Part shown: positions 3,419 through 41,030 of the stretch, in pieces
Layout: every line of letters begins with the position of its first letter
Position numbering within the stretch: the stretch's first letter is position 1
Assembly: GCA_000388065.2 (NCBI GenBank)
Contig: KB932204.1
Length of the DNA: 64,000 bases
Direction: 5' to 3' (one strand)
Origin: Fonticula alba ATCC 38817
Lineage: Eukaryota; Protista; Nucleariida
The notes under the pieces: generated by a model
The model's input: only the letters and a program-made list of their open reading frames with translations
Database searches by the model: none
What the model was told of the DNA's origin: nothing
Translations under genes and position numbers: made by a program

Positions 3419-4878
3419 GATGACCTGGGGGGGGGGGGGAAGGTTGGGTGTGCTTCTTCTTTCTCGGTCTTCTCGAGATGACGGNNNNNNNNNNNNNNNN
3501 NNNNNNNNNNNNNNNNNNNNNNNNNNNNNNNNNNNNNNNNNNNNNNNNNNNGGGGGGGGGGGGGGGGGGAGAAGTCAGAGCAATTGGCGCTGGCTGTGTC
3601 CGAGAAGAAGGTGCACGGCCGCAATGGACCTGCTCGGGGCCCGGTGCGATTTCACCGGGGGGGGGGGGATCCGTTTGCCGGTCGCGCACCCGTGTATGAT
3701 CCCTCCGCCCGAGGCGGGAAGCACTCATGCCCCCGAGGAGGGGGTGTTTCGGCAGGCCTGCTCGTGGTTCAGACCAACAACAGGGGCTCCGGCATCCGTC
3801 TGCAGTTGGTCCAAAGCCACGACGCTCTCCCCTTTGCCTTCAGCGGAGACAAGGGGAAAACCCCGCCCGGACTCTCTCCCAGCCCCCGCCTCCGCCCCCC
3901 TGCCTCGGAGTCATGGGCGTGCTCCGGTCGCAGCGTGCACCCAACGGCACAACGGGAGATGGGGACCCGGAAGGAAGGAAGGAGAACATCCAGGACCAGC
4001 CCCGAGGACTGGCCAATCTCGTTGATCTCTCTTCGGAGAATGCAATGGTGTTTTGTGTTTGGAATTCGACCCAACATAGCTGCATTCCACAGCGTAGCCC
4101 GGCGCTTGTCGGTGCCCCCTCGCTCGCTGGGCCGAAGATGCCCCCTTTTGTGTGGCGCCTTTTTCTACGGTCACACACAATACCCACGCACATGGCATGG
4201 CCCCTCCCCTCCTACGCGCCCTGCTATGTGGTCTGAGGTGCGGAGCAGGCAGAAGGGGGGTAGCCTCATCGGGAGGTCGGGACCGAGGACCAAGATCCGG
4301 GTCCGATTGGTGACCTCTCGCGCCAAAACAAACAGCAGGATCCGTGCGCAGCGCACTGGTCGCGCTGCTCCTCCCCTCCAGGGTCAGGGCTTGCGATTGC
4401 GACTGCACCTAGCATCGCCTCGCCTCGCCTCGCCTCCCCACTGGCACCCCTTGCGCGCTGTCTCGCCGTCTCCTGGTCGGGATATGTTCAGGTATATTTT
4501 TGGGGGAAGAGAAAAGTGGCGCACGGCTAGGGGAGAGCGCACAGTAGACTGGCACTGCGCGCTGCGGCCGACGTGTAGCATGTGGATCTGGGCACGCAGT
4601 GGGACAACAGGGGGCAGAGCTTCACTTGAGCGACGCGACGACAACATATGCACCAAACAGAAGTCCCGATATGTGCGTACGTATGTACGTGCGCGCGCGC
4701 GCGTGTGTGTGTGTGTGTGTGTGGTTTGGTGGGGAAAGGGGGAAGGAAAAGGCAAGGGGCTGCCAAGGAGGGATCCTCCCCCGCGCCGCTGCTACCTTCC
4801 TGATGTGTGTGTGTGGGGGGGGGGGAGGGCATATGCACGTGCGCGGGATGACACGCGAGGAGGGGTATAGTCGGCTAA

Positions 4879-35534: not shown

Positions 35535-36771
35535 TGTGGTGACAGCTGCGGGGTGGGGAGTGCTGGACGGAGACACAGGAGGAGGCAAGGGTCCAGAGAG
35601 GGCGAGGGGCGGAGAAAGAGGCAAAAGAGGCGCGGGAGAGTCGGGCTGCGCGTGTGCTCGTGCGTGCAAAGGGATGGGCAAAAACTGGGGCACTCTACCG
35701 AAAGGGCCCGGCGGGTCCCCCCTCGGCTGGACGCATCCCCTTGGCCTGGAGGTGAAGCCGCCTACAGATCCAGGGCATCCCTTCCGGGCGGAGCAGGGTC
35801 CCCGGGTTGGCAGGGGGCTCGGGGGTCTTGGAGGCCGCCTGTCCGGGCCAGTAACGTTGTTGGATTCCGCCTCGGCATCCAGGCCCCCCTCCCCCCCCCC
35901 CGCCGGTATTGCCGGCGCGGGCAGAAATAAACGATCTCCCAGGAGCCCCGGGCACGATCCACCTGGGCCGATTGCCGTCGTCTTTCCCAGGCCAGGGACG
36001 GGAGCCCGGCTCTCTCTAGACGCTTCGTTGGGTTAGCCCCACACGTGAAATGCCGCACGCATTTCAGGTGCCTGCCTCGCGGCCCACGGCCGATCGGGCC
36101 TGGTCGGGGGTGGGCGCCGTTTGTTGGCAAAAAAAAAAGGGAAAAGAAAAAAGGGGGGCCTGTAGAGCCCGCCCCCACAGGATGGAGTCACCGGCAAGTT
36201 GTGTCTGGATGTGGTGGCGGTCGTGTCATTACTAGCTCATTTTGCCGGGGCCGCCGGGCACGGCGGATTTGCCACCCCGCCTCGGTCCCTCTCCCAGTTC
36301 CTCCGTCCGGCCGCCCCCCCCCCCCCCGGCTGCCCCGAACGCGGGGACCCCCGGGGGAAAAAGAACAACACCCTGCCCCACGCCCTCCACGGCACCGGAA
36401 CAGACCGGCGGGGGGCCTGGTCGGAGGGCCAGTGCCGACGCATCATGCTGCCAGCGCATGCCCATCGCGCAGGGGGCGGTTGTGGGCGATGGGGCAGTTT
36501 GGCTTACGCTGGCAGCTGCTCGGCCAGCCCCCGCCCCTTCCCCCCCCCCGGCCTGGATGTGACGCGCATGGTCTGGTCCGTGAGGGGAGTCCGCGCGTGT
36601 GGGCGGGAGCGCTGGCAAGGGGGCTAGGGGGCGCTTCTGAGCGGTATTTGTTTTTTATTTTTTATCTGTCCCTTCCCCCCCCCCCCCCCGGAGAAGCCGG
36701 CCAGCTAGCCAGCTAGCCAACCAGCCAAGAGGGGGGGGGGGGGGGGGCGGGGCACATGGAGCGATATCCCA

Positions 36772-38530
36772 TTAGGATCCCTTCTCGGCCAGACATACGA
36801 CACAACCAACCGTGGCATTGGCCCCATTGGCCGGGTGCACCCGGCCACACGTGCACGGCTTGACCGGACGTGGGCTGACCGAGTGGCAGGGATTGCAGTA
36901 ATACTTGCCGGAGCACAGGAAAAGGGCCTCGTTGCAGCAGAAAAAGCACTTCCAGATCCAGTTGGACTGCTCGTGCTCGCACTGGGGCTTGTCCAGATCA
37001 CAGAAGGCGCATAGCTGTCCTGCCTCATCCTCGCCAGCCGGCCCGGCGATCTGGCAGTCACGCACGCCCTGGAAGAAGGGATGCTGTGGTTTGGGGATGG
37101 GCAGGAGGGATAGATAGAAAAGAGGAGGGGAGGGGGGGGGGGCGTGAGAACGGTGGGCAGGGAGGCGGGGGAAGAGGCGAAAGAGGGGCTCGGCAGACGC
37201 GGCAAAGGACAGGGTATTTCCCCCCTCGCCCACCCACCCACCCAACAAGAGTGCGCACCTTGCACCGGGTGCAGAGCGAGAAGATGTACCGCGAAAGATA
37301 GTCCGCCACCTCGGTGAGGACCTCCTCGTTGGCTAACTCGGGCCAGGTGTCTTCGGCAGTGGTGTTCTGTTGGTCGGCGGCGATGAAGCGCTCGGGCAGG
37401 GGCTCCCCGGTGTGCTGGAGGTACTTGATGAGAATTTGCATGCTCGGACGAATGTGGTTGCGGAGACAGGACGAGGCCAAGGCCGCCAGGGAGGCCGGAT
37501 CACGGAGGAGATCCACCCCGAGGCCACGCCGGCAGGAGGGACAGCGCAGGCACCCGGCATCGACGCGGCTGCCGGGGTTCATGGAAGCCGTCAACATCTC
37601 CTCCAGGCAGGCAACATGCAACGAATGCAGGCAATTTAATGTGATGATGGGGGTATCAGATGCGGGCCAGCTTTCAGGGTCCAACAGCAGGTGAAGGTAG
37701 GTCCGGTCATCCTCATTCGGGAACAGGTCGTCCAGGGCCTTGGTGAATTCGGCCACCAGGCCCGGGCGCCGGAATGCCGCGGGATCTTGAATTTGAAGGA
37801 AAAGCTCATAGCGACCATCGAAGAGGCGCCGAAGGAGCTCCCGGCTGCGCGCCTCGCCGCCCTCATCGAAGGGATGGAAGTCCATCGGCTGCTCGAGGCA
37901 CACCACGCATTGGGTAAAGCGCTCGACCATTTCGCGATGCTCATTGAAGCGCTGGAGGAGGTCCTGCACAAGGGTATCAAAGAGGATGTCATGCTGGCGG
38001 ACTTCCTGCTCCTCGGCATGGTGGATCTGCCCCAGCAGGGCGTCGGCCGTGGTGGCCAGGCTCCGGCTATTCTGGGTGACGAGCTCCTGCACCCGGCTGA
38101 AGTTGCCGATGAGCCGGTCCTCGGAGGCCAGAGACCGCTCAGCCGGCGACAGGCCGGTCGTGTCAACGGGAGCCGCCACGCTGTGGCAAATGTTCATGTG
38201 TGACAGCTGGGCCGCCACCTGGCCTGTCCAGGCGCCAGTGCGTTCGATACACTGGGCCACTGTCCGGATGGCGGCCAGGCGATCGGTCAGTGAGGGATTG
38301 GCCGCCAGGGATAGAAGGGCCACGGTCATGTCGGAAATGAGCGAGTCCACCGCGAGCGAGGGCTCGACCGCCTGGGCTGGCGGATTCAACAGCTCATCGG
38401 TGGCCGGAGGAGCGGGAGTAACCGACAGCTCGGCCTCCGGAGGGGTGAGCTCCGGCTGGGGATTGGCCTTCATGACATCGAGGGGCGCCGGGTGAGCGGC
38501 GACTGGAGCAACAAGGGCCTCGGCGGACAT
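36772..38530 (-). CDS. Compact MYCBP2/PHR-like RING-Cys-Relay (RCR) E3 ubiquitin ligase, ~527 aa, 2 exons
   Basis: Exons 38530-37259 and 37083-36772. RING-H2 (CVVC...CLHSLHVAC...CPSC) followed by YIFSLCTRCK-HPFFQGVRDC...LCAFC...CEH...WKCFFCCNEALFLCSGKYYCNPCH...HPANGANATVGCVVC, colinear with the MYCBP2 C-terminal RING-TC module. Confidence 0.85.
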
Positions 38531-39635
38531 GACTCGGAGGAGGGGCGAAAGACGAAGCAAGGAGCGAGGAAATCGTGTGTTTGTGGCTGAGTGAACAAAA
38601 GGGACTGGAGACACATGGTTGACATCTCAGGTGGGTGCTGGCTTAAAGGGACATGATCCGGGGTCGGGGAAGCCGCCACAAGAAGAGACCCCGGAGCCAG
38701 GGGACTGCCATTGGTCAGTGCCACGGACCTGCCTCAGGGTGGACCATGAGCACCGGCCCCACGCCACACACACACACACACACGCACATGCGCACAGGGA
38801 CACGCCAGACACACGGGGGGGGGGGGAGGGGGGGCGGGCGGGCGAGAACGAACAGTGGAGGAGGGGGGTGTCCAGCTCGCCTCCGATCACTTGGGACCTT
38901 GGAAATTTAGAGGCGGGGCATGTGCCCGTCCGGGCACCGCGCTCCCTCGGGCAGCTGCCCGATTCGAATGCGTCCCCAACCGGGCCCCCAGTTTGGATGA
39001 GGGGGAAAGGTGCGCGCCTGTCACGAGAACATATCTGTGGGATCAAATTGATGATGGAACACAGCAACGTGACCCTCGGGCTGGGGTCGGCTCGCGTGAG
39101 AGGGTGGCCGTGTGCCTTTCCCGACAAGCAAGGGGAGGGGAAACACACGAAAAGAGGCAGCGACACAACGCCGCGGCGGACCCGAGGCTAAAGAAGGGGG
39201 ACGCGCCTCGGGCGCCTGGAGCTGTGGAGAAATGCAAAGCATTGGCAAACGGCGAGTCACATGGTTGATCAGGTACAGGACCACTACAGCCGCCGCTCCG
39301 GGCTGGGCTCGATCTCCCGGCCTCCTGCCGACATCTGCCGTGAAAAGCCTGAGAAGCGGGCACAGCTCCCGGATGACGCTCCATGGATGAGCCATGCCGC
39401 CCCCCTCGCCTCCGCCCCCTCCCCCCGTGGCCCCTCTCATACATGGGCATCCCCTCACAAGCAGAAGAGAAACGTGCGATCTAAGGAGAAACACATGGGC
39501 GCCATTTCCAAAGGAGACGGGACTGAGGGAAGCAACAGAGACGCTCTTATTTGGAGGGGGAGGAGGAGGAAAAGAAGAAGGAACAGGGAGGGGGGGCAGG
39601 GGCAATGGGCTGACCCGTGCCAAGTCTATCACACC

Positions 39636-40398
39636 TCAGTACCCAGGAGGGCGAATGATCGGCTTGTTTTCATAATCCTCCTGCTCCAAGTCGAGGTGGC
39701 GCTGAAGCTTCTGTTGTACGCCGGTGAGGAGGAAAATGGGTGTCAGAGGCGGGGCAGGGAGGCTGAACAGACAGGAGGCGGAGAGGGAGAGAGAGAGAGA
39801 GAGGGAGGGAGGGGGGGAGCGACGATGGCAGGGGAGGGCCACAGCCACGCACGAAGTACTCCTCCTGGATGTTGAAAACCGGCCGAGGAGCATCCGGATC
39901 TTGAGCCTTGACCTTCTTCCGGGCCTCGGCCGAGGCGAACATGGTCAAAACCTCCGGGTCAATCTGACGACGTGAAGCGCAAATCGGCCGTTAGAAGGGG
40001 GCGGGGCGGGGCGGGGGGATCGGGCCGGAAGGGAGACAGGAAGAGGGACAGCGGGGCGAACTGGGTGGCGGTGGAGAGGTGAAGCAGGCCCGGAGGAGGG
40101 TGTTGTGAGGTGCGCGACGCACCAGGCGATTCCGATCCAGGCGATCCATCTTGGCCTGCATAAAGGTGGACAGCTGGATGGACCCGAGCACAACGAGGAG
40201 GATAAATGGCAGGCCGAAGGAGAGGAAGGGATTCCCCCGAGTAAAAGTGCGCAGACGATCCGTCAGACGCCGGGACTGGCTTTCGCGCATGAACTCCTCC
40301 ATGGCCTCCTGCTGGACCACATGCAGGTACTTGGGCGGCATGGGCAGCGGCTTCTCTTTGGTGGCAAGTCGCCGAAGCCAGTAAAGAGGTCCAGACAT
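39636..40398 (-). CDS. COX16: Cytochrome c oxidase assembly protein COX16, ~153 aa, 3 exons
   Basis: Exons 40398-40123, 39963-39853 and 39710-39636. TM segment PFLSFGLPFILLVVLGSIQLSTF, then FNIQEEYF and DYENKPIIRP. Confidence 0.85.
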
Positions 40399-41030
40399 GG
40401 TGGGCAGCTGTGGTGGATAGGCGGCGAAGGAGGAAAGATGGGGAGGGGCGATTGGCGGGGCGGGNNNNNNNNNNNNNNNNNNNNNNNNNNNNNNNNNNNN
40501 NNNNNNNNNNNNNNNNNNNNNNNNNNNNNNNNNNNNNNNNNNNNNNNNNNNNNNNNNNNNNNNNNNNNNNNNNNNNNNNNNNNNNNNNNNNNNNNNNNNN
40601 NNNNNNNNNNNNNNNNNNNNNNNNNNNNNNNNNNNNNNNNNNNNNNNNNNNNNNNNNNNNNNNNNNNNNNNNNNNNNNNNNNNNNNNNNNNNNNNNNNNC
40701 CCCCCCCCCCCCCCCCCAGCCCCCGGGGGGGGATTCTCCGGCGAGTGTTTGCCCTGGGTGAGGCGCCGATTCGTTGGCACGTGTTGGCTCCCAGCCCGGG
40801 CTCAGTAAGGTCCTTCGTGGATGATCCTGCCAGTGCCGGGACGCACCTCAGCAAGCCATTCATTTGTTCCCACACTCGGGGCCAGACCGGGGCCCGGTCC
40901 TGTGCCACCGCTCCCCCCCCTCTCGCCCCCCCCCTCCTACTGTACTCTCGCCGTCCCCCCCCCCCCCGCTTTTACTTGATCTATCCCCTCCCCATCCACT
41001 CGGCCCCCTGCTCGTACGCCTGCCGATAGA

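Follow-up and report, generated by a model that had tools for sequence, protein, structure and literature searches.

A free-standing, divergent member of the RING-Cys-Relay E3 ubiquitin-ligase family in Fonticula alba, with small relatives across most eukaryotic supergroups

The 64,000-nucleotide stretch of Fonticula alba scaffold KB932204.1 (assembly GCA_000388065.2) analysed here, which we call the window, carries on its minus strand a two-exon gene, H696_02984 (36772–38530), encoding a protein of 527 amino acids (aa). F. alba, an amoeba with an aggregative fruiting stage, belongs to the fungal side of the opisthokonts and is placed in Rotosphaerida (Opisthokonta). The product is identical to the database protein H696_02984, for which the only names given are 'hypothetical protein' and 'RING-type domain-containing protein'. 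The most likely reading of the evidence, which we propose here, is that H696_02984 is transcribed as a stand-alone gene and belongs to the RING-Cys-Relay (RCR) E3 ubiquitin-ligase family, with a predicted working relay. The accessible literature introduces RCR ligases by way of one protein, the giant MYCBP2 of animals, and treats them mainly in connection with axon degeneration. A sequence-only reading of this region had described a two-exon gene of about 527 codons at 36772–38530 whose C-terminal part is colinear with the RING–linker–tandem-cysteine (TC) module of MYCBP2; the gene is borne out by the sequence, the database protein and spliced transcript contigs, and the module by the sequence and fold comparisons that follow.

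Residues 198–527 form the RING–linker–TC module. Comparison of residues 215–527 with all PDB chain sequences by phmmer returned MYCBP2 alone (entries 5O6C and 6T7F, E 4.7e-9), in three colinear blocks. These cover the latter half of the RING, the TC domain from its start as far as CNxCH, and the closing HP.NG...GC..C motif. In an exhaustive HMMER search of 1.84 billion representatives, 207 proteins scored E ≤ 1e-3. Nearly all of the best 150 of these 207 relatives have RING and TC in colinear order, and most modules end within a few residues of the C-terminus. The family was found by this search together with one starting from a typical member, whereas word-index searches, which returned only the protein itself for exon 1 and three proteins for the family profile, carry no weight on absence. 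From these relatives, an alignment of 94 RCR modules (A1; Fonticula plus 93 others) was used for the profile, the residue counts and AlphaFold. The A1 profile matches 5O6C at E 6.3e-90 over chain residues 4–261, with ordinary RING domains following at 1e-6 or worse, and a profile built without Fonticula scores the Fonticula module at 139.7 bits (E 1e-42). Pfam, applied to the full 527-aa protein, gave only weak RING matches and no RCC1, PHR or DOC domain, in agreement with the sequence-only reading; no Pfam model matched the TC domain, either in Fonticula or in nine relatives.

The fold search is specific as well. AlphaFold (AF2), supplied with A1, modelled residues 198–527 with a mean predicted local distance difference test score (pLDDT) of 76.9; a single-sequence model reached a pLDDT of 40 and was not used. 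In a Foldseek search of the PDB, the model matched 6T7F_A (E 6e-10) and 5O6C (E 4.4e-9) with probability 1.00, and all other matches had E ≥ 0.85 and covered the RING only. VIA-align likewise placed MYCBP2 first, with Z 9.3 (179 residues, root-mean-square deviation (rmsd) 7.8, model residues 1–318 against 4380–4629) and Z 9.0 (140 residues, rmsd 3.7); APC11, ranked after these two, reached Z 5.2. TM-scores between the model and MYCBP2 were 0.33–0.40 and the global rmsd was high; these values fit a multi-domain module with a flexible arrangement and an insert, and the result is best taken as a match of modules, not as a rigid superposition. That the module as a whole is homologous to RCR is practically certain.

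Turning to the catalytic residues, we take chain A of 5O6C (263 residues) to be MYCBP2 4378–4640, with the chain index plus 4377 giving the MYCBP2 number. This offset reproduces all three residue numbers that the sequence-only reading had cited, namely C4520, C4572 and H4583. The Fonticula equivalents, with codons on the minus strand, are:

37054–37056, minus strand: C434 (codon TGC), upstream mediator-loop cysteine (GVRDC), aligned without gaps to 5O6C position 143 (C4520); Cys in 94 of 94 modules
36913–36915, minus strand: C481 (codon TGC), downstream cysteine (ALFLC), aligned with 5O6C position 195 (C4572); Cys in 91 of 94 modules
36883–36885, minus strand: H491 (CNPCH), aligned with 5O6C position 206, the general-base H4583; His in 90 of 94 modules

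The codons assigned previously to the two cysteines are thus exact and the alignments agree on their equivalence, as they do on the retention of the histidine of CNxCH. One review describes the Cys–His–Glu triad of MYCBP2, in which E4534 is the acid; another describes the general-base histidine and a hydrophobic pocket of three phenylalanines as the source of threonine selectivity. Ahead of C434, the PxF[FY]xG motif is kept in Fonticula, and the loop between C434 and the next zinc ligand has 14 residues, as against 16 in MYCBP2.

These residues lie within the following arrangement of domains:

37940–38530, minus strand: N-terminal region, aa 1–197, with a Pro/Ala-rich first stretch of about 60 aa and the remainder predicted to be helical
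37532–37909, minus strand: RING-H2 finger, aa 208–333, defined by A1 columns, weak Pfam RING matches and the alignment of RING structures over model residues 1–147
37661–37885, minus strand: 75-aa RING insert, aa 216–290, between the first CxxC and the CxH, recognized by comparison within A1
37286–37519, minus strand: helical linker between RING and TC, aa 338–415, with AF2 helices at model residues 148–177, 183–191 and 205–216
36775–37285, minus strand: TC zinc domain, aa 416–527, split by the intron and supported by the PDB, A1 and profile alignments

All eight RING-H2 ligands are kept (C208, C211, C300, H302, H305, C308, C330 and C333), each in an invariant or near-invariant column of A1. 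RING residues that usually contact the E2 are present as well: a valine after the first cysteine, a CPxC and an arginine after the last cysteine. The linker is colinear with that of MYCBP2 in both the VIA-align and profile alignments. Within the TC domain, each of the 16 conserved Cys/His columns is occupied (C420, C423, C449, C452, C459, H461, C470, C473, C474, C487, C490, C501, C503, H507, C518 and C521). Since these 16 positions remain once the two catalytic cysteines and the base histidine are set aside, they would correspond to four zinc sites, the ligands being assigned from conservation rather than coordinates. The stretch from the CH motif to the last zinc site is shortened in Fonticula to a CxC form that is common to 18 of the 94 modules. 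The N-terminal region accords with the helical N-terminus of about 200 aa described earlier, and gave no family match in Pfam or, for exon 1, in the word-index search mentioned above.

By homology with MYCBP2, the RING-H2 finger would bind a ubiquitin-charged E2, from which ubiquitin would pass as a thioester to C434, on the flexible loop with which the TC domain opens. An intramolecular relay from C434 to C481 would follow, and C481 would then hand ubiquitin to a substrate nucleophile activated by H491. Substrates or partners would be bound by the helical N-terminus of about 200 aa, and possibly by the 75-aa insert, instead of by the RCC1, PHR and DOC domains that animal MYCBP2 has. We consider a working relay the most likely reading because the two non-structural cysteines and the histidine survive in so divergent a sequence.

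The RING insert warrants separate description. Among the other 93 modules, only two have a comparable insert (16 and 24 aa). AlphaFold modelled the Fonticula insert as a small bundle of four short helices (model residues 26–50, 53–57, 61–72 and 76–86) with pLDDT of about 57–79. It is unbroken in the transcript contigs and is therefore not an unspliced intron. In RING domains the first loop forms part of the surface that binds the E2; speculatively, the insert could modulate E2 binding.

Several observations weigh against an intact relay enzyme of the MYCBP2 type. The column of the triad glutamate, E4534, holds Gly446 in Fonticula and Glu or Asp in 66 of the 94 modules; the acidic residues E442, D443 and E444 lie two to four positions upstream of Gly446 and might substitute for it. 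At the positions taken as those of the threonine pocket, Phe4573, Phe4578 and Phe4586, the Fonticula protein has Ser482, Tyr486 and Ser494, and the column of His4577 is occupied by Tyr485. The 75-aa insert, unique among the 94 modules, sits in the very RING loop that forms part of the E2 face. No other module among the 94 is as divergent as that of Fonticula, a possible sign of relaxed constraint. Finally, we found no biochemical evidence for the Fonticula protein or for any non-animal RCR protein in the open-access literature.

The substituted active-site columns, the large insert and the lowest profile score of the 94 modules would all suit a degenerate or repurposed RCR protein, in which the fold has been kept and the relay or esterification chemistry lost or changed, leaving an ordinary RING E3 whose zinc-rich C-terminal domain serves for binding, or else a non-catalytic scaffold. 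We regard this main rival as unlikely, although it carries appreciable weight. Both non-structural cysteines and the histidine have been kept at only 23–33% identity to relatives, which argues for selection, and the gene is transcribed and correctly spliced. Moreover, about 30% of the family have no acidic residue at the glutamate column, and 13 of the 94 modules, including that of Fonticula, have tyrosine in the His4577 column as a recurrent variant, so that these are variants tolerated in the family. The latter column belongs to the GTTHFC motif beside the second catalytic cysteine, and its histidine is otherwise conserved.

A further possibility, which we put forward tentatively and hold to be rather improbable, is an active RCR enzyme with a remodelled acceptor site. 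Such an enzyme would carry out chemistry other than that of MYCBP2, for example on serine, other hydroxyls or non-protein nucleophiles, with the insert serving as an E2-selecting or autoinhibitory element; taken with the pan-eukaryotic spread described below, relay-type non-lysine ubiquitination would then be an ancient eukaryotic feature with diversified chemistry. In general, the change in the phenylalanine pocket bears on acceptor preference and not on family membership. Acceptor preference is not transferable from MYCBP2 and, since the pocket residues differ, the acceptor is probably not threonine-selective. The ester-forming activity on threonine and serine that had been proposed from the sequence is not inferable, given the glycine at the triad-glutamate column and the serines at two of the three phenylalanine-pocket positions.

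The favoured reading, a free-standing and transcribed RCR family member, also depends on the boundaries of the gene, the elements of which are as follows:

37259–38530, minus strand: coding exon 1, aa 1–424, with the ATG at 38530–38528; unbroken in transcript contigs
37084–37258, minus strand: intron of 175 nucleotides (nt), donor GTGCGC and acceptor ...CCACAG (ends CT..AC on the plus strand), with the joint 37083/37259 seen in one contig per run in four runs
36772–37083, minus strand: coding exon 2, aa 425–527 plus the TAA stop at 36774–36772, from the sequence and transcript contigs
36755–38635, minus strand: stretch covered by the spliced contigs of about 1.7 kb, delimited by contig ends and not by mapped RNA ends
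38627–38629, minus strand: in-frame TGA that closes the frame upstream of the ATG, inside the transcript contigs of runs X1–X3

The two exons join two long minus-strand open reading frames, 37058–38614 and 36772–37248. The transcript data comprise four runs from 2012 (X1–X4), representing two samples of one study, whose record type is only guessed to be RNA; 83–86% of sampled words of the window were present in the four runs. Each run yielded one contig of 1662–1706 nt, extending from 38635, 38630, 38631 or 38591 to 37259 and from 37083 to 36755 or 36754, and in all four the 175-nt intron, with GT..AG ends, is skipped exactly. A contig so precisely spliced means that the runs contain RNA and that H696_02984 is transcribed; the gene is transcribed and correctly spliced. 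An alternative acceptor at 37068, 15 nt further downstream and giving a product of 522 aa, was ruled out, as 37083 is the acceptor both in the transcript contigs and in the database model. The HPFFQ segment that acceptor 37083 adds aligns without gaps to KAYFG of MYCBP2. The intron donor (37254–37258, minus strand) has a C at +4.

A gene-model artefact, in which this region would be the 3' end of a much larger PHR-type gene with missed upstream exons, finds no support; an assembly gap (a run of N) lies about 1.9 kb upstream. Between the stop codon and a point some 105 nt ahead of the ATG, the contigs follow the genome with no further joint, and they carry the in-frame TGA (38629–38627), which precedes the ATG by 99 nt. 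COX16 is the neighbouring gene upstream, on the same strand, and an unrelated gene of 356 aa is annotated downstream. The in-frame TGA and the COX16 neighbour together mean that H696_02984 is not the tail of a giant PHR gene, in line with the Pfam result for RCC1, PHR and DOC; that this is the stand-alone protein of a non-animal, as had been supposed, is upheld. Equally negligible is the idea that a cysteine-rich RING protein merely resembles MYCBP2 by chance: single exons searched against the PDB do rank MYCBP2 first each time at a marginal E of about 0.03, and cysteine-rich sequences inflate scores, but the idea is refuted by the colinear whole-module phmmer match, the family profile, and the Foldseek and VIA-align searches, which are specific for the two MYCBP2 entries. 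Both the gene-model artefact and chance similarity are excluded.

Some further observations concern the flanks of the gene. An upstream open reading frame of about 52 codons (38470–38625, minus strand), with ATGs at 38625 and 38616 in the same frame, overlaps the main ATG at 38530 out of frame; these upstream ATGs lie inside the transcript contigs, but only some 10–20 nt from the contig ends. The COX16 neighbour encodes 153 aa with a Pfam COX16 match (approximately 40100–40900, minus strand), and a run of N near 40400–40720 lies in or beside its model. Homopolymer C/G tracts occur at 36729–36752 and about 38815–38842, where all transcript contigs break and many tiny contigs pile up; an apparent joint from 38833 to 36730 is a low-complexity artefact of these tracts and not splicing.

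Compared with human MYCBP2 (PAM/Phr1; Highwire, RPM-1), whose RCR region spans residues 4378–4640 in 5O6C and 6T7F, the Fonticula protein has the same order of RING-H2, helical linker and TC domain, has the equivalents of C4520, C4572 and H4583 together with all the inferred zinc ligands, and finds in MYCBP2 its only significant PDB match by sequence and by fold. Identity in structural alignments is about 21–24%. The two proteins differ in scale and setting: MYCBP2 has about 4600 aa with RCC1-like, PHR and DOC domains, following the list given in the sequence-only reading, against 527 aa and none of these by Pfam in Fonticula. MYCBP2 also has RAE1-, F-box- and Myc-binding regions. Within the module, Fonticula departs from MYCBP2 in the RING insert, the glycine at the E4534 column, the Ser/Tyr/Ser at the phenylalanine-pocket positions, and the shorter segment, in CxC arrangement, between the CH motif and the last zinc site.

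The RBR ligases (Parkin, HOIP and ARIH) share with RCR ligases an E2~Ub-binding RING and, after it, a zinc domain whose catalytic cysteine takes up ubiquitin as a thioester. They gave weak structural matches to the RING1 side, limited to the RING and helix part of the model (VIA-align: RNF216 Z 4.6, HOIP Z 3.5). In contrast to RCR ligases, they have one catalytic cysteine, in RING2/Rcat, plus an IBR, and have neither a TC domain nor a second relay cysteine.

The closest counterparts of H696_02984 in build are small proteins from other protists. Small RCR proteins, about 400–900 aa long and differing in their N-termini, are found among amoebozoans, ciliates, metamonads, diplonemids, CRuMs, cryptists and algae, their modules usually ending within a few residues of the C-terminus. 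Named examples, with lengths and any informative database names, are:

Palpitomonas bilix: 456 aa
Rhodelphis marinus: 628 aa
Anaeramoeba flamelloides: 646 and 735 aa, 'e3 ubiquitin-protein ligase mycbp2'; UniRef 'RCR-type E3 ubiquitin transferase' for the 646-aa cluster (KAJ3440543)
Diplonema ambulator: 728 aa
Diphylleia rotans: 533 aa
Heterostelium album PPL_02410: 614 aa
Polysphondylium violaceum CYY_007838: 757 aa, UniRef 'RCR-type E3 ubiquitin transf...'
Acytostelium subglobosum: 756 aa
Balamuthia mandrillaris: 629 aa, NCBI 'E3 ubiquitin-protein ligase highwire'
Stentor coeruleus: 580 and 578 aa
Paramecium species: 574 and 537 aa
Bryopsis sp. (green alga): 605 aa

The ESM Atlas adds ciliate and diatom RCR clusters, the diatom ones with an FBA domain. 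The N-terminal parts of the relatives contain SPRY, IBR, F5/8 type C or FBA domains, or nothing recognisable; the RCR cassette thus spans most eukaryotic supergroups in combination with varied N-terminal domains. An IBR-type or Cys-rich stretch ahead of the module, or a SPRY, F5/8-C or FBA domain, is present in many protist members, whereas the helical N-terminus of the Fonticula protein is unrelated to these and its RING carries the insert. In the open-access literature we found no experimental characterisation of the small protist RCR proteins and no discussion of non-animal RCR proteins or MYCBP2 relatives. The view of the Fonticula gene as a singular find does not hold, given small RCR proteins in many protist lineages, some of them already auto-named MYCBP2, highwire or RCR-type.

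Certain relatives show architectures of interest in their own right. An IBR-type half-RING finger lies upstream of RING and TC in many protist RCR proteins (P0020, P0081, P0072, P0073 and others), an arrangement that mixes RBR-like and RCR parts and of which we found no description. Two large metagenomic proteins differ in where the module is placed: in P0007 (2288 aa) it occupies residues 544–802, thus falling in the first third of the protein, while a weak F5/8 type C match lies close to the C-terminus, and in P0031 (2434 aa) it is C-terminal, with an N-terminal SPRY domain. The best-scoring relative of the Fonticula module is P0003 (416 aa, 32% identity), encoded on a Logan SRR33270664 contig (L002, 8.3 kb) that adjoins a histone-deacetylase gene.

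Within this family the Fonticula copy is an outlier. Its 139.7 bits are the lowest of the 94 modules against the family profile, for which the median is 252 bits, a value inflated by the presence of the other 93 modules in the profile from which Fonticula was left out; a fairer comparison is the human module, also outside the profile, which scores 305 bits. Typical protist members are 40–58% identical to each other over the module and are close to the human one, whereas Fonticula is only 23–33% identical to any of them. On the strength of this low score and low identity, the Fonticula copy is a derived, fast-evolving member and not a proxy for the ancestor. The earlier description of it as minimal and possibly ancestral is accordingly not sustained for what is the most divergent of the 94 modules, carrying a lineage-specific 75-aa RING insert.

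The Fonticula protein is therefore a divergent addition to a known kind that is more widespread than the accessible literature suggests. The taxonomic spread of small RCR proteins suggests that they originated well before animals and neurons. Compact members may be easier to express, and so may help to work out how the relay operates and what determines acceptor specificity in ester-linked ubiquitination. The Fonticula copy itself, with its changed acceptor pocket and RING insert, is a natural variant; as a divergent outlier it is informative about which residues are dispensable, and it is not the best model of the ancestral state.

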